Shown: positions 21,091 through 34,963 of the stretch, piece after piece
How the letters are laid out: every line of letters begins with the position of its first letter
How positions within the stretch are numbered: position 1 is the first letter of the stretch
Source: Piromyces finnis finn
Lineage: Eukaryota > Fungi > Neocallimastigomycota
Assembly: GCA_002104945.1 (NCBI GenBank)
Contig: MCFH01000010.1
Coordinates: 868,001 to 932,000 of the forward strand
Direction: 5' to 3'
DNA length: 64,000 bases
Program-made: the position numbers and the translations under genes
The notes under the pieces: model-generated
The model's input: only the letters and a program-made list of their open reading frames with translations
Told to the model about the DNA's origin: nothing
The model's database searches: none

Positions 21091-22215
21091 ATGTCTAAGA
21101 CTTGGAATTTCGGAGCTGGTCCAGCTGTTATGCCACACAGCGTTTTAGTAAAGGCCCAAAAGGAACTCGTTGATTACCGTGGTTCTGGTATGTCCGTTAT
21201 GGAACTTTCCCACCGTTCCAAGGAATTCGATGACATTATTAACAATGCCGAAGCTAATCTTCGTAAGTTAATGGGTATTCCAAGTAACTACAAGGTTCTC
21301 TTCCTTCAAGGTGGTGCTACTGCTCAATTCTCCAGTGTTTTCCTTAACCTTGTTGGTGATGACATTAACAGACCATGTGATTACATGGTTTCTGGTGGAT
21401 GGTCTGACAAGGCTGCTGCTGAAGCTAAGAAGCTTGGTGCTAATGTTAATTACGTTTTCAACACTAAGTCTGAAGGTTTCACCCGTATTCCACCAAAGAG
21501 TGAATGGAAATTAAGTCCAAACGCTTCTTACCTTTACTTCTGTGATAATGAAACTGTTCACGGTGTTGAATTCCAAGAAGTTCCAAAGGTTAACTGCCCA
21601 ATTGTTTGTGATATGTCTTCCAACATTCTTTCCCGTAAGGTCGATGTTTCTAAGTACGATGTAATTATGGCTGGTGCTCAAAAGAACATTGGTCCAGCTG
21701 GTTTAACTATTGTTATCATTAAGGAAAACCTTATTGGTACCCGTCTTAACCCAAAGGTTCCATGCCCACTTTACTTAAACTACAAGACCCACGGTGCTAA
21801 CCGTTCTTTATACAACACTCCACCAACCTTCGGTATTTACATGGCTGGTCTTGTCTTCGAATGGTTATTATCTATTGGTGGTGTTGATGCTATCTCTGAA
21901 ATTAACTCTAGAAAGGCTAACCGTTTATACTCTACCATCAACAAGTACAGCAACGTTTACAAGGCTGTTGTTTCCCCAGACTGCAGATCTAGAATGAACG
22001 TTCCATTCAGAGTTATTGATGCTTCTGGAAAGCCATCTAAGGAACTTGAAGCTGAATTCCTTAAGGGTGCTGTTGCTCGTCGTATGGTCCAATTAAAGGG
22101 TCACAGATCTGTTGGTGGTATTCGTGCCTCTATTTACAACGCCATGCCAGAAGAAGGTGTTGAATTCTTATGTAAATACATGGAAGAATTCGCCAGACAA
22201 AAGGCTAAGTTATAA
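21091..22215 (+). CDS. SER1: Phosphoserine aminotransferase, 374 aa, intronless
   Basis: NFGAGPA N-terminus, ELSHRSKEF, FLQGGATAQF, DMSSNILS, the PLP-lysine motif AGAQKNIGPAG, NTPPTF and GHRSVGGIRASIYNA. Confidence 0.97.
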   Translation: MSKTWNFGAGPAVMPHSVLVKAQKELVDYRGSGMSVMELSHRSKEFDDIINNAEANLRKLMGIPSNYKVLFLQGGATAQFSSVFLNLVGDDINRPCDYMVSGGWSDKAAAEAKKLGANVNYVFNTKSEGFTRIPPKSEWKLSPNASYLYFCDNETVHGVEFQEVPKVNCPIVCDMSSNILSRKVDVSKYDVIMAGAQKNIGPAGLTIVIIKENLIGTRLNPKVPCPLYLNYKTHGANRSLYNTPPTFGIYMAGLVFEWLLSIGGVDAISEINSRKANRLYSTINKYSNVYKAVVSPDCRSRMNVPFRVIDASGKPSKELEAEFLKGAVARRMVQLKGHRSVGGIRASIYNAMPEEGVEFLCKYMEEFARQKAKL

Positions 22216-25280: not shown

Positions 25281-28200
25281 TTAATTTCCAAGGTTTAAAA
25301 TGTCCTTAATCTTATCAGATATTTCAATATATTTGGAGGAAGCAGGTGAATCTGGATAATTATCAACAAATGGTTCACCAGCATCACAAGAATTAACAAT
25401 TCTTGGGTCTAATGGAATTGCACCTAAGAATGGAACATTAATTTCCTCACATAAAGCCTTTACACCACCATGAGTAGCTGGGAAAATAATGGATTCTCCT
25501 TTACAAGATGGACATACAAAACCGGACATATTTTCTACAATACCAAGAATTGGTAAGTTAACCTTTTTGCAGAAGTTGATTTCTTTTCTAACATCTTGAA
25601 TGGAAATTTCTTGTGGAGTAGAAATTAAAATAGCACCATCAATATCACAACCCTTTAAATATTGAACAATAGATAAATGTTCATCAGAAGTACCTGGTGG
25701 GGTATCAAATAATAATAAATCTAAATCACCCCATTCAACATCCTTTAAGAAGTGCTTAATTAAACCATTCTTCTTTGGACCACGCCAAATAACTGATTCA
25801 TCTTGCTTTTCAAGTAAGAAACCAATAGACATAACAGCCAAATTATCTTGTACATAAACTGGAGTAATACCAGTATTACTTTGATGAACTGGTTCATTTT
25901 CAGCACCCATAATAATTGGTTGACTTGGACCAGTAATATCAACATCACAAAGACCAATTTGAATATCTTCATCTCTACCTAATGTGTATGCAAGTTGAGA
26001 CGAAAGTGTACTCTTACCAACACCACCTTTACCAGAAAGAATTAAAACTTTATGTTTAACGGTTTCCATCTTCTTTTTAATAATATCTAAGTCTGGATCA
26101 ACAACAATCTTATTAGACATACAGAAAGCTCTATTTGGACATCCTTCACATGCTGAAGCTTTACCACGGTTTTCACTTTCCATTCCTGGACATCCAGAAT
26201 TTGCTTTAGCCATCTGGCATGTAGCTCTATTTGGACAATTAGCACAAGGAGAAGCATTGCCTTGATTCTTACAACAACCACCTTGTTTACCTGGACAACC
26301 AGCACATGGTGATCCTCCTTCCTTCTTACAGCATCCTCCTTGTCTACCTGGACAGCCAGCACATGGTGATCCTCCTTCCTTCTTACAGCATCCTCCTTGT
26401 CTACCTGGACAGCCAGCACATGGTGATCCTCCTTCCTTCTTACAGCATCCTCCTTGTCTACCTGGACAACCAGCACATGGTGATCCTCCTTGCATTTTAC
26501 AACAACCACCTTGTTTACCTGGACAACCAGCACATGGTGATCCTCCTTGCATTTTACAGCATCCTCCTTGTTTACCTGGACAACCACCGCATGGTGATCC
26601 TCCTTGCATTTTACAACAACCACCTTGTTTACCTGGACAACCACCGCATGGTGATCCTCCTTCCTTCTTACAGCATCCTCCTTGTCTACCTGGACAACCA
26701 CCGCATGGTGATCCTCCTTCCTTCTTACAGCATCCTCCTTGTTTACCTGGACAACCACCACATGGTGATCCTCCTTCTTTCTTACAGCATCCTCCTTGTT
26801 TACCTGGACAACCACCACATGGTGATCCTCCTTCCTTCTTACAGCATCCTCCTTGTCTACCTGGACAGCCAGCACACGGTGATCCTCCTTCCTTCTTACA
26901 GCATCCTCCTTGTCTACCTGGACAGCCAGCACATGGTGATCCTCCTTCCTTCTTACAGCATCCTCCTTGTCTACCTGGACAACCAGCACATGGTGATCCT
27001 CCTTGCATTTTACAACAACCACCTTGTTTACCTGGACAACCAGCACATGGTGATCCTCCTTCCTTCTTACAGCATCCTCCTTGTCTACCTGGACAACCAG
27101 CACATGGTGATCCTCCTTGCATTTTACAACAACCACCTTGTTTACCTGGACAACCACCACATGGTGATCCTCCTTGCATTTTACAGCATCCTCCTTGTTT
27201 ACCTGGACAACCACCGCATGGTGATCCTCCTTCCTTCTTACAGCATCCTCCTTGTTTACCTGGACAACCACCGCATGGTGATCCTCCTTCCTTCTTACAG
27301 CATCCTCCTTGTTTACCTGGACAACCACCGCATGGTGATCCTCCTTGCATTTTACAACAACCACCTTGTTTACCTGGACAACCACCACATGGTGATCCTC
27401 CTTCCTTCTTACAGCATCCTCCTTGTTTACCTGGACAACCACCACATGGTGATCCTCCTTCCTTCTTACAGCATCCTCCTTGTCTACCTGGACAACCACC
27501 ACATGGTGATCCTCCTTGCATTTTACAACAACCACCTTGTTTACCTGGACAACCACCACATGGTGATCCTCCTTCCTTCTTACAGCATCCTCCTTGTTTA
27601 CCTGGACAACCACCGCATGGTGATCCTCCTTCCTTCTTACAGCATCCTCCTTGTTTACCTGGACAACCACCGCATGGTGATCCTCCTTCCTTCTTACAGC
27701 ATCCTCCTTGTTTACCTGGACAACCACCACATGGTGATCCTTCTTCCTTCTTACAGCATCCTCCTTGTTTACCTGGACAACCACCACATGGTGATCCTCC
27801 TTCCTTCTTACAGCATCCTCCTTGTCTACCTGGACAACCACCACATGGTGATCCTCCTTGCATTTTACAACAACCACCTTGTTTACCTGGACAACCACCA
27901 CATGGTGATCCTCCTTCCTTCTTACAGCATCCTCCTTGTTTACCTGGACAACCACCACATGGTGATCCTCCTTGCATTTTACAGCATCCTCCTTGTTTAC
28001 CTGGACAACCACCGCATGGTGATGATTGTTGTTCCTTTTGTGGAATGGAAGATTCACTTTCTTCTTTAATATCTATATCCATTGAATTTTGATCTTGTTT
28101 TTCAGTAACTGTCATCATAGCATTCTTTTTACAACAACCACCTTGTTTACCTGGACAACCACCACATAATGATCCTTCCTTCTTACAACATCCACCTTGT

Positions 28201-28679
28201 TTACCTGGACAGCCACTGCATGAAGATCCTCCTTCCTTTTTGCAGCACCCACCTTGCTTACCGGGGCAACCTCCACATCCTTGTCTTTTTGGACAACCAC
28301 TACAAGGAGATGATTGTTGTTCTTGTGAAATTGAAAAAGTCTGACTTGTATTTTCAGTAGCTGTATTCATCATAGCTGCACGCTTTTTACAACAACCACT
28401 ACATCCTTGTTTTTTTGGGCATCCGCCACATGGTGATGATTGACCTTGTTCTATTGATGATTCTTGTCTTTCTGCACGTCTTTTACAACATCCGCCACAA
28501 CCGCTTTTACCAGAGCATCCACCTTTTTGTTGTTCATTACTAACTACATTCATTTCTACATCATTTATTTCTTCATTATCTTTACAACATCCTTTTTTAG
28601 TATCACTGGAAATATCTTCATTGTTTCCATTTACATTATTTTCTGAAAATTTATTAATTTCTTCTTGATTATTATTCAT
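25281..28679 (-). CDS. NBP35: Cytosolic Fe-S cluster assembly scaffold NBP35/NUBP1 (Mrp/NBP35 P-loop ATPase) with a very large Cys-rich N-terminal repeat extension, 1132 aa, intronless
   Basis: The C-terminal ~300 aa have the Nbp35-specific CX13CX2CX5C motif ([24 protein letters not shown]), deviant Walker [43 protein letters not shown] and [11 protein letters not shown] (bridging CPXC). All of this is in one frame with the repeat array. Confidence 0.93.
26256..28022 (-). repeat. Coding minisatellite: 31 x 57-bp units encoding SPC(G/A)GCPG(K/R)QGGCCK(KE/MQ)GG
   Basis: The 57-nt period is visible as a 3-nt offset per 60-nt line. 31 units were counted in the translation, and 31 x 57 = 1767 nt matches 26256-28022 exactly. 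The last unit ends ...CCKNQGN. Confidence 0.95.
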
Positions 28680-28865
28680 TATTTAATAGATTAAATATAT
28701 ATTCCAAAAAAAAAAAAAAAAGAAAATAAATTAAATTATCTTAAATGCTTAATTAAAAATGTTATAAATATATAATATATAATATATAATATATAATATA
28801 TAAGAAAATTATAATATAAATATATAATTTATGCAAATAAAGAAAAAATATAATTATTTAATTAG

Positions 28866-28911
<46 letters not shown>

Positions 28912-30362
28912 AAATTATTAATTTATTAATTTATAAATTATTATTATTATTATTATTATTAATATAAGTAGTAGTAGAAGGTGTTATTGTATTAATATTA
29001 GTATTGGTCATTGAATTCCATAATTAAAATTGAAGATTAAAAATATCAGATTTTTTATTAAGAAATAAGAAAACATGATGAAATATTAAAATTCTGAACT
29101 TATTACTAATAAAGATATCATTTTAATTGTATTATCGAAAAAAAGAAAGAGATTTTATATATCAATTTTAATTGTTGAAAAATAAATAATAAGCATAACC
29201 CCATTTTATTCTCATCAATTTTTTTATTGAATTTATTTTCTTATTTTAAATAACTATATTGTATTGTCGATTACTACAATTAAAATTTAAATTCTTACAT
29301 TTATTATGCAACAAAATTATTATAGGTTTTAGATTGAAATTTACAGTAGTTGATTTTCTTCAAAATTAGAGTTTTCCTTTCCTGTATATTTTTAAAAATA
29401 TATATATGTATTTGAAATTATCTTATTTAATAAAACAATTTTACAATAATAATATTGATAAAAAAAAGAAAGAAAGAAATGAAAATATAAATTATAATAA
29501 AGAAATAATATTATCAATTTATATTATATAATAATTAATTTATCATTATTACATTACTACATTATAAATTCTATCTTTATAATTTTTAGTTATTTTCTTA
29601 AAAAATACTCGCTAATTTTAACCAATGATATCTTTAAAAAAAATACTCTTTATAATTAAAATTATGATTGTTGTACAATCTTGATAATAATTTAGTATTT
29701 AAGCCATAATATTATAAATATAATAAATTATTTTTTTTATTTTCTATTATATTTACATATTTTCATATTCCATAATTGATTCACCAACCCATAATGTTTT
29801 ATAATTCTTTGGAATTACATTACACATACTCATATTTTTTGAGTATTACCTTTTAGTCTCTCAAAATTTTAACAGAAATTTATATTTACTCCTATAATTG
29901 TAATTATAAATAAATATAAATAACAGTTTATATTTAAAAAAATATTTTTTATTTTTTAATTTTTCTTTTTTATTTTTTATTTTTTATTTTTATTTTTTTT
30001 ATTTTTATTTTTATTTTTATTTTTATTTTTATTTTTATTTTTATTTGTATTTTTATTTGTATTTGTATTTTTTTTTTTTTTGTTTACTTTTTATACATTA
30101 AATTATAATTTTAACTATATTTATCATTATTTTCGTTTTACAAAATTCTCAATTATTTTTATTTTTTCTAAATTATTTTAGAAAAAATAAAAATAAAAAT
30201 AATTATATAATTTCACATATTAATTATATATTTGTAACATTTAATGAGAGATAAGTTAAAAAAATCTATAAAAATATTATAAATTTAATTAGCATAAATT
30301 AATTTTTTTTAAGCATTTCTGTTTGTGGGTATGTTATTAAAATAGCTATTATATTTATGTAT

Positions 30363-30953
30363 TTAATTGCAAGAGCATCCACAACCACAAGAAGTCTTTA
30401 CACAACCAGCACACATTTGGCCTGGTTTACATGGGCACTTTCCTTCAGCATCTCTGCATGGACAATCAGTTGGACAATCACAAGCCTTCTTTTCTTCTGA
30501 GCATCCACACTTTTTAGTAGTAGAACAACCACAACCACATCCTTCAGCATTTACACAACCAGCGCACATTTGACCTGGTTTACATGGACACTTTCCTTCA
30601 GCATCTCTGCATGGACAGTTTGGTGGACAATTACAAGCCTTCTTTTCAGAAGTGCAACCACAGCCACAACCACAAGAAGTCTTTACACAACCAGCACACA
30701 TTTGGCCTGGTTTACATGGGCACTTTCCTTCAGCATCTCTGCATGGACAATCAGTTGGACAATCACAAGCCTTCTTTTCTTCTGAGCATCCACACTTTTT
30801 AGTAGTAGAACAACCACAACCACATCCTTCAGCATTTACACAACCAGCACACATTTGACCTGGTTTACATGGACACTTTCCTTCAGCATCTCTGCATGGA
30901 CAGTTTGGTGGACAATTACAAGTCTTCTTTTCAGCGGAGCAACAATCACACAT
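30363..30953 (-). CDS. Long modular metallothionein-like protein, 196 aa, 53 Cys, four modules (A-B-A-B)
   Basis: 27% Cys in CxC, CC and CxxC clusters. No F, W, Y, H, L or I and no signal peptide. Four copies of EKKxCxCPxxCPCRDAEGKCPCKPGQMCAGCV, with a near-exact 285-bp internal duplication. Confidence 0.82.
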   Translation of the reverse strand: MCDCCSAEKKTCNCPPNCPCRDAEGKCPCKPGQMCAGCVNAEGCGCGCSTTKKCGCSEEKKACDCPTDCPCRDAEGKCPCKPGQMCAGCVKTSCGCGCGCTSEKKACNCPPNCPCRDAEGKCPCKPGQMCAGCVNAEGCGCGCSTTKKCGCSEEKKACDCPTDCPCRDAEGKCPCKPGQMCAGCVKTSCGCGCSCN

Positions 30954-31059: not shown

Positions 31060-31237
31060 ACCTTTTTATATTTTATTTAGAAATAAATTTCGCTTTATCT
31101 ACCAATAATTAATAAATTAATTTTTAAAATGACTCACTAAGCAAATTTTGGTTTTTTTTAATTGGTAAAAACATAGTTCATTTATTAATAAGCCACTATA
31201 TGAATCATTATAGAAAAAAAGAAATTTTTTTGAGTCA
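31060..31237 (-). promoter_or_regulatory. Candidate promoter of the metallothionein-like gene: TATA-like TATAAAAAGG plus two AP-1/Gcn4/Yap-type TGA(C/G)TCA sites
   Basis: TATAAAAAGG on the minus strand at 31070-31061. TGACTCA at 31130-31136, TGAGTCA at 31231-31237, and near-match TGAATCA at 31201-31207. All lie within 290 bp of the ATG at 30953. Function is inferred. Confidence 0.45.
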
Positions 31238-33606: not shown

Positions 33607-34963
33607 TTATTCTTCTCCTTCGCCTTCTTCTCCTTCTTCTCCTTCTCCTTCTTCATTTAATGAAGGAACCTCTAAAGATATTTCATCATTTTCATTTTCT
33701 TCTTCTTTTTCTTCTTTTTCTTCTTCTTCTTCTTCATTTAATGAAGGAACCTCTAAAGATATTTCATCATTTTCATTTTCTTCTCCTTCTTCTTCTTCTT
33801 CGTTAAATAATGATACTTTCAAAGATATTTCATTATTATCATCATCTCCTTCCCCTTCATTATCATCATCACCATCTTCATTAAGTGATGATACTTCTAA
33901 AGATATTTCATTATTGCTATTTTCATTTTCTTCATCTTCCTTACTATCATCTTCTTCCCTTTCTTCATTAAATGGTGATATTATTCCATTATTTTTATTT
34001 TCTTCTTCTTTTTCTTCTTCATTAAATGAGGGTATTTCTAAAGATATTTCATTACTTTTATTTTCTTCTATAGTAATTTTATCTTTTGGAAAAAGGTAAT
34101 CATTTTCAAGTTTACTAAGATCATAACCTAATTCGGTTAATTTTTCCGCATAACAATTCTTTCTATTTTCTAAAATTCTAACTTCAGCCTTTAAATCAAC
34201 AATAACTTCTTTGAAACGTAAATTAGCTTCTAATTGTGTTGCATTTACAACTGATTCGACTAAACAGAAAATCTAATTAAGTATAAAGGAAAAAAATCTT
34301 AATTTCTTTTTTTTTTTTTTTTTTAAAAATTTATTATTAAAAATTTATATTTAAAATTTATTAAAAACTTACTCTCCAAAAACGAAGTACAATTAAAACA
34401 TCAACAAATCCTTGAGCTTTTTCATTAGCCGAGAAGAAAGTAATAATCATAGTAACAGTGAATGTTATTATAACAGTAAAAGAATCAATAAAATTAAGCC
34501 AACTTTCAAAGAGATATTTATAACCGTGACAGTAAATATGTAACAAAACTTCAGTTGTGAAAACATATAAGAAGATGTCCGAAACAAAACCAAGATGATG
34601 AACTACAGTAGCAAATTTATCTTGACCATATGAATCTTGTGGTTGTGAATCAGGTAAGTCACATTGTTTTTTTTCATCTAATTGAACAAATAATTCTAAT
34701 ACAACAATGAAAATATCACAAGCGATCATTAATAAAATAGTGAGATTCCATTTAGTAGTACTTAACATATGTCCAATTCTATTTCTTAAGGTTCGACTTT
34801 CTGGTTTTTCTTTGACTAAGAATAATATATCGTTTTCATTATAAATTGAAATTTCATTATCATAACTGTATAAATTTTGATTACTTGGAACAGAAAGATA
34901 ATTTGATTGTTCTTGCTTATCTTCTTCATTTAATAAAGGTGTTTGTTCTGTTTCATTATACAT
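33607..34963 (-). CDS. HVCN1: Voltage-gated proton channel Hv1-like (isolated voltage-sensor domain, coiled coil, acidic repeat tail), 418 aa, 2 exons
   Basis: Exons 34963-34373 and 34272-33607 (GTAAGT...AATTAG, phase 0). Exon 2 was translated by hand and is open to TAA at 33607. Four TM helices: S1 ILLMIACDIFIVVLELF with the selectivity Asp, S2 ...VFTTEVLL, S3 NFIDSFTV, S4 LIVLRFWRIFCLVES with the Hv Trp. No pore domain. Confidence 0.78.

Follow-up and report, generated by a model that had tools for sequence, protein, structure and literature searches.

The anaerobic gut fungus Piromyces finnis carries a gene for a 196-residue, cysteine-packed protein that we predict, judging from its sequence, to be a metallothionein (MT) with four modules. 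The best reading of this gene is an independently built modular thionein, since the protein has the composition of an MT and no leader, spaces its cysteines differently from described units, matches no known family and has relatives only on sequences that are, or resemble, those of gut fungi. It would constitute a new sequence family within the known, polyphyletic metallothionein class, and we consider it likely that the protein acts as a cytosolic thionein which forms one metal-thiolate cluster per module.

The open reading frame (ORF), which lies in the window (the whole 64-kb stretch of DNA that was analysed, positions 868,001-932,000 of contig 2), is a genuine, conserved coding gene. In the ORF list it runs uninterrupted and intron-free from ATG to TAA. 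Its existence is far beyond chance, given that the probability of 196 open codons at the base composition of the window is about 5e-9, that its GC content is 44% compared to 20% for the 64-kb window, and that it is conserved in other fungi. The gene is present as a single copy in its own genome (searched assembly: 56.46 Mb, 232 contigs). The encoded protein has a mass of 19.8 kDa and is composed of 53 Cys (27% of all residues), 25 Gly, 22 Lys, 18 Pro, 14 Ala, 12 Glu, 10 Thr, nine Asp, nine Ser, seven Asn, five Met, and four each of Arg, Gln, and Val; Phe, Trp, Tyr, His, Leu, and Ile are absent. CxC pairs hold 44 of the 53 cysteines, accompanied by four CxxC and one CC motif, and the longest run free of cysteine spans six residues. 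The hydropathy of residues 1-20 averages -0.35, with a maximum of 0.93 for any 15-residue window (Kyte-Doolittle), which argues against a signal peptide, a presequence or a membrane segment.

The initial annotation had described 196 residues with 53 cysteines, no aromatic, His, Leu or Ile residues and no leader peptide. The counts were reproduced in full when we repeated them, and the missing leader agrees with the hydrophilic N-terminus and with a start, M-C-D/N-C, that is shared with both relatives of the protein. The proposed origin of an A-B-A-B design from a 285-bp duplication likewise stands, as the duplication is recovered by TRF as an in-frame tandem repeat (Table 1). The remark that such genes are easily missed by annotation holds only in part: an exact look-up of the Piromyces protein in a collection of 15 billion proteins gave no record (the collection may omit this genome's own records), but an identical sequence is contained in the ESM Atlas, and the Neocallimastix copies have been annotated, as hypothetical proteins.

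Table 1. Positions in the window of the predicted metallothionein gene, its modules and the upstream sites.
Feature	Position	Strand	Basis and remarks
Complete CDS, metallothionein-like protein	30363..30953	-	196 codons plus TAA; composition, single copy, relatives, dN/dS
N-terminal cap, residues 1-11, 3 Cys	30921..30953	-	M-C-D/N-C start common to both relatives (alignment)
Module A1, residues 12-62, 13 Cys	30768..30920	-	29-residue core, CGCGC...CGC tail, acidic/Lys linker
Module B1, residues 63-106, 12 Cys	30636..30767	-	core with 4 non-synonymous differences from A; CGCGCGC tail
Module A2, residues 107-157	30483..30635	-	copy of A1; cores 1 synonymous base apart
Module B2, residues 158-196	30366..30482	-	core same as B1; C-terminal end CGCGCSCN
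In-frame 285-bp (95-codon) tandem duplication	30379..30934		TRF: 285-bp period, 2.0 copies, 99% matches; identity at offset 285 is 93% across the whole CDS
TGACTCA, Gcn4/AP-1-type bZIP site	31130..31136		183 bp upstream of ATG
TGAGTCA, Gcn4/AP-1-type bZIP site	31231..31237		284 bp upstream of ATG

The protein is laid out as a short cap followed by A-B-A-B, each 285-bp copy carrying two diverged versions of the module (Table 1). A core of 29 residues recurs four times (residues 12-40, 63-91, 107-135, and 158-186) and follows the pattern CxCPxxCP[C/Y]R-x5-C[P/S][C/Y]K[P/L]G-x2-CxGC[V/I][N/K], after which comes a tail of the CGC type. The gaps between its cysteines form the series 1,3,1,6,1,5,2, that is, [CxC]-x3-[CxC]-x6-[CxC]-x5-C-x2-C, and the tail brings each module to 12-13 cysteines. 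Eight Cys, two Pro, one Arg, one Lys, and three Gly are invariant in the module alignment, and the invariant Pro, Arg, Lys, and Gly beside the cysteines make the predicted module more domain-like than most MTs. Between the A and B cores dS is 0.28-0.37 and dN 0.06, so that their differences are mostly synonymous. The two 285-bp copies, by comparison, show a single synonymous base difference within nucleotides 32-290 of the CDS. The last A-B doubling is almost free of mutations and must therefore have either happened very recently or been homogenised; an artefact of the assembly is a less likely explanation.

An exhaustive phmmer scan of 1.84 billion protein cluster representatives returned two clusters only. 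The closer one, P0001 (84 residues, 69% identity, E 1.2e-19), contains two modules and is encoded on four AT-rich, fungus-like metagenome contigs from ENA. The other, P0002 (86 residues, 43% identity, E 1.2e-4), has a cluster partner of 95 residues, P0003, and these two are annotated, as hypothetical proteins, in Neocallimastix 'constans' and N. lanati. Both the Neocallimastix relatives and the GC content of 20% are in keeping with an anaerobic gut fungus as the source of the window. The family thus appears, so far, only on contigs that belong to anaerobic gut fungi (Neocallimastigomycota) or resemble theirs. Further searches of other kinds added no member: word-index searches of proteins gave nothing new when queried with the full-length protein, its 95-residue half or P0001, and none of 158 stretches matched by a back-translated scan of JGI metagenome contigs was confirmed by tblastn, where masking of the Cys-rich query as low-complexity sequence is suspected. 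The motif K-[PL]-G-[QE]-x-C-x-G-C-[VI]-N, sought in the same contigs as a degenerate DNA pattern, gave 13 loci (L017-L029), all of which proved to be chance matches on translation. The contigs encoding P0002 are evidently missing from this collection.

Comparison of the three proteins suggests how the gene evolved. The Piromyces protein and P0001 both terminate a few residues past the final CGC. Between species, dS of the core is 0.5-1.6 and dN/dS (Nei-Gojobori) is 0.09-0.26 in 17 of 18 module pairs, the remaining pair (U1-Neo1) giving 0.62; values well below 1 indicate that the frame is under purifying selection. Modules of one species are closer to each other than to those of other species, which points to independent duplication or concerted evolution. 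Module number amounts to one in Neocallimastix, two in P0001 and four in Piromyces, and Tyr takes the place of a Piromyces Cys at one position in P0001 and at two positions in Neocallimastix, each a single-base change. If Neocallimastix is the outgroup, Piromyces would have gained thiolates, although this polarity depends on three taxa and no tree. The relatives also qualify two earlier descriptions. The lack of aromatic residues, together with the very high cysteine density, is true of the Piromyces protein but specific to its lineage, as the 84-residue P0001 contains two Tyr and the Neocallimastix protein several aromatics as well as His. Similarly, the term 'four-module giant' is correct for Piromyces, but not for relatives with one and two modules, and the last doubling is very recent.

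The Neocallimastix copy itself may be decaying. In N. 'constans' (L006 8160-8330; L016 is identical), the annotated frame enters a tail without the Cys pattern after one intact module, and remnants of the cysteine motif, namely the stretch K-C-D-C-A-K-E and the end K-C-G-C...K-C, stand in the two alternative frames. Candidate short introns would preserve the frame in this 3' half, the two assemblies are identical there, and the public gene models disagree (86 versus 95 residues). The 3' half may be a decayed second module, or it may contain unrecognised tiny introns. A (TTA)n run, the length of which varies between the two assemblies, follows the homologue (L006 8390-8500).

Classical metallothioneins contain few or no aromatic or histidine residues, and the Piromyces protein has none. 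Metallothioneins are further recognised by CxC, CxxC or CC motifs and a cysteine content of about 15-30% (PMC4755600); the Piromyces protein, with 27% cysteine and 44 of these residues in CxC, lies within this range. At 19.8 kDa it is long for an MT; accepted modular MTs comprise 122-257 residues. Its module does not correspond to the seven-cysteine unit of fungal family 8, the Neurospora type (gaps 1,3,1,6,1,5,2 versus 1,5,1,3,1,2). Neither Pfam-A nor NCBIfam contains a family matching the protein, even at E <= 10, the PDB sequences match neither the protein nor the module profile, and the ESM Atlas offers a single unnamed cluster neighbour at 0.75, below the usable level. Genome-wide, PF12749, PF12809, and PF11403 (Metallothio_Euk, Metallothi_Euk2, and yeast CUP1) had no matches, a weak negative as the search had no positive control. 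AlphaFold2, run on a five-sequence alignment of the module, returned a mean pLDDT of 58.6 and essentially no secondary structure, as would be expected if the chain needs metal in order to fold; the confidence of the model was highest (68-70) over the first 20 residues. The initial annotation had interpreted the gene as an independently built modular MT with a different module. This interpretation is supported in part: the gene is genuine and has the composition and motif pattern of an MT, the cysteine spacing is distinct, no known MT family is matched and relatives come only from gut-fungus-like sequences. It needs amending as regards the core, because that of the relatives is not made of cysteine at every such position but includes Tyr.

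How might such a protein work? Since Phe, Trp, Tyr, Leu, and Ile are missing, only four Val and five Met are present and a Cys occurs at least every seventh residue, the chain presumably cannot fold alone. Its thiols would be free, given the near absence of hydrophobic residues, the lack of a leader and the reducing cytosol of an anaerobe. Each module of 39-51 residues would then fold around metal via its 12-13 thiolates to form a polynuclear metal-thiolate cluster, the clusters being strung together through short linkers of acidic residues and Lys. By analogy with animal MT domains of 9-12 Cys, which bind M(II)3-4, a module could accommodate roughly four divalent ions and the whole chain about 16-18 Zn/Cd or around 25-30 Cu(I). 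Capacity would have grown through duplication of modules, from one to two to four, most recently by the in-frame doubling of 95 codons. The choice of metal is the least secure step. We lean weakly towards divalent-metal character (a buffer or store for Zn and a sink for Cd) over that of a Cu-thionein, because the protein contains 22 Lys compared to seven Asn and its modules hold 12-13 Cys rather than seven; the guide is a heuristic from molluscs, as a Lys-rich, Asn-poor composition goes along with Zn/Cd character in snail MTs (PMC5535948).

Codon usage suggests that the gene is expressed at a moderate to high level, without being proof of it. Lysine is encoded by AAG in 16 of 22 cases, a codon that ordinary ORFs of the window use in 108 of 477 (Fisher p 1.8e-6). 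CCA (18 of 18), GCT (14 of 14), and ACT (10 of 10) are the choices of enolase, GAPDH, and EF-1alpha in the same genome. The match to highly expressed genes is incomplete, however, with GTA at 4 of 4, AAT at 5 of 7, and GGA at 9 of 25, and AAG is used less than in glycolytic genes (p 0.006).

Transcription of the gene is probably controlled through Gcn4/AP-1-type bZIP sites and not by a copper-fist factor. The two upstream sites (Table 1) are the only intergenic TGASTCA sequences in the 64-kb window, the other four being located inside long ORFs. The Neocallimastix homologue has the same site at -282, -421, and -511 (L006 7490, 7580, and 7719), so that three of the four TGASTCA of its 16-kb locus stand upstream of the homologue. 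Taken together, the Piromyces and Neocallimastix genes have five sites in their upstream regions of 1 kb each, compared to a background density of 0.064 per kb (Poisson probability 2.5e-7, calculated post hoc). There is no TGASTCA within 1 kb upstream of P0001, and over the same distance none of the three genes is preceded by an MRE, an Ace1 CuRE, a Mac1 site, a Zap1 ZRE, an HSE, or an STRE. Copper-fist and PAP1 domains were not found in the genome by a six-frame search, which, having had no positive control, provides a weak negative. In other fungi, sites of the AP-1/Gcn4 type are a typical feature of the regulons for stress and for amino acids.

Among 11 bZIP loci examined, at least six encode the Gcn4-type basic region N-T-E-A-A-R-R-S-R or, in one case (L046), a close, intron-split variant. 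These loci (L039, L040, L044, L045, L047, and L046) are located on contigs C68 (857-861 kb), C101, C163, C13, and C124, two of them forming a tandem pair on C68 at a distance of 3.7 kb, and make up a sizeable family serving one type of DNA site. A Cys-rich Gcn4-like bZIP was not found among the 11 loci. A bolder and rather doubtful proposal is that gut fungi possess a metal/thiol circuit of their own, devoid of copper-fist factors and canonical fungal MTs, in which a lineage-specific thionein responds through clustered TGASTCA sites to a Cys-packed, Gcn4-like bZIP sensor, and in which capacity is tuned rapidly by module duplication and Tyr-to-Cys exchange.

The same composition would fit equally well with a thiol-rich buffer against oxidants or oxygen, or with a reserve of cysteine and sulfur, in which 53 free thiols scavenge oxidants when the anaerobe is exposed to oxygen, or store reduced sulfur. 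Both the upstream AP-1/Gcn4-type sites and the obligately anaerobic life of the organism are compatible with such a role. However, the CxC and CxxC spacing and the positions of Pro, Arg, Lys, and Gly have been kept under purifying selection, which argues for a defined coordination geometry over bulk thiol content; in addition, MTs also scavenge radicals, and the idea overlaps with a metal-binding thionein more than it competes with it. We regard a bulk thiol function as unlikely. The conserved non-cysteine residues could, in turn, be taken to mean that the module is a small, structured binding or regulatory domain of the zinc-knuckle type with six to eight Cys, which was secondarily enriched in cysteine and multiplied in Piromyces, and not a thionein for storage or buffering. 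Only eight Cys columns of the module are invariant, relatives have Tyr for Cys at two positions, Pro, Arg, Lys, and Gly are invariant, and the best AlphaFold confidence is reached over the first 20 residues. Against this stand the lack of any Pfam, NCBIfam or PDB match, of a confidently predicted fold and of a partner domain, and the fact that even the one-module Neocallimastix protein contains 11 Cys in its first 55 residues. We judge this alternative to be quite unlikely as well.

High-cysteine repeats also occur in many extracellular proteins and half of the ORF is a 285-bp tandem repeat, so one might suspect that the ORF is spurious, arising from a GC-rich repeat, or that it encodes a disulfide-rich protein which is secreted or structural. 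This possibility is largely refuted and very improbable: a signal peptide and hydrophobic stretches are lacking, the start is conserved, dN/dS between species is far below 1 and the differences between A and B are mostly synonymous. A further suggestion comes from the co-oriented neighbour, a gene for an NBP35/Mrp-type ATPase (25281-28679, minus strand) located downstream, with the thionein-like gene 1.7 kb upstream of it. In this ORF, a 57-bp repeat (30.8 copies, 93% matches) encodes about 31 Cys-rich units of 19 residues, with about 160 Cys in total, ahead of the ATPase. Co-orientation, short spacing and the Cys-rich repeats of NBP35 could indicate a two-gene unit in which the small protein is the functional partner of a Cys-expanded NBP35, as a carrier or donor of Fe or Fe-S. 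Yet the Neocallimastix homologue stands between genes for XAP5 and glutamate dehydrogenase, flanks that rule out conserved synteny with NBP35, the Piromyces XAP5 gene lies about 240 kb off on the same contig, and there is no TGASTCA in the upstream region of NBP35; we find such a partnership improbable. A derivation of the module from the Cys motif of NBP35 (C-x2-C-x5-C) was rejected, as the module profile scored -5.7 and -28.3 bits on the NBP35 motifs, values that were equalled or exceeded by 790 and 627 of 1000 shuffles, respectively.

Several features of the surroundings deserve mention in their own right. Long microsatellites, (TAT)n and (TTTTTA)n, flank the thionein-like gene (28849-28965 and 29946-30094). 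An intron-free gene for phosphoserine transaminase (SerC; TIGR01364, 500 bits) at 21091-22215 on the plus strand exceeds its neighbours in GC3 (0.36) and in the use of AAG (27 of 29); this codon pattern is that of highly expressed genes and could reflect either high expression or a bacterial origin. A 200-residue ORF at 34361-34963 (minus strand) gives a match resembling an Ion_trans voltage sensor (E 6.6e-9). Glutamate dehydrogenase (ELFV_dehydrog) has been amplified locally, with four copies of identical score in both orientations within 25 kb of contig C206 (92-117 kb).

In the full-text literature, we found no paper linking metallothioneins with Neocallimastigomycota, and the co-mentions of 'metallothionein' and 'anaerobic fungi' were not relevant as far as title or abstract tells. 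Provided that metal binding holds true, the phylum would gain its first thionein and the metallothioneins a new sequence family. The protein would also offer a clean natural case of stepwise growth in capacity (one, two, and four modules) in which the last doubling is nearly free of mutations, as well as a way to learn how Zn, Cu, and Cd are buffered by strict anaerobes in a sulfide-rich gut with its unusual metal availability. The shared bZIP sites provide a testable route to the regulator. Being compact, free of introns, and simple to express, the module might find use in metal-capture studies.

Modular growth of this kind has parallels in other organisms. The MTs of Tetrahymena and Paramecium consist of submodules of the CCC and CKC type, from which the motifs of the Piromyces protein differ, and they were not retrieved in the phmmer scan. 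Their architecture is nevertheless comparable: these proteins of unicellular eukaryotes (family 7) are modular, 96-203 residues long and the product of repeated intragenic duplication (PMC4862169, PMC4755600), a design that the Piromyces protein shares. The alpha-domain of mammalian MTs and the multi-domain MTs of snails, such as Littorina, are rich in Lys and contain about 9-12 Cys per domain, each with an M(II)3-4 cluster, and the domains are arranged as beads on a string so that duplication raises capacity (PMC5535943). These proteins have no sequence relationship to the Piromyces protein and a different cysteine spacing, and the cluster stoichiometry proposed here is taken from them by analogy only. 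What they have in common with it is the abundance of Lys, a comparable number of Cys per module and growth in capacity through duplication.

The long modular Cu-thioneins of other fungi are the most similar in overall design. The character of CnMT1 and CnMT2 from Cryptococcus neoformans and of TmMT from Tremella mesenterica as Cu-thioneins has been established experimentally (PMC4755600), whereas the Piromyces protein is a predicted thionein. Their hosts belong to another phylum and are aerobic, and no sequence similarity was detected in the phmmer scan. CnMT1, CnMT2, and TmMT comprise 122, 183, and 257 residues, respectively, and TmMT has 57 Cys (23%), of which 48 are in CxC (PMC4755600). Whereas the unit of the Neurospora, Cryptococcus and Tremella proteins has seven Cys in the order [CxC]-x5-[CxC]-x3-[CxC]-x2-C, with the variant CxC-x3-CSC-PPG-x-CxC-A-x-C-P in TmMT (PMC4755600), the Piromyces module carries 12-13 and a tail of the CGC type, and in contrast to the ten exons of the TmMT gene, the Piromyces gene is unsplit. 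The specific resemblance to TmMT is confined to the CxC-x3-CxC opening and to a Pro-Gly that follows the CxC pair preceding the last Cys of the unit, and these features might reflect either distant kinship or convergence. The general likeness is broader: as in CnMT and TmMT, a Cys module has been amplified in tandem to yield a long and very Cys-rich protein, in Piromyces one of 196 residues with 27% Cys and 44 of its 53 cysteines in CxC.
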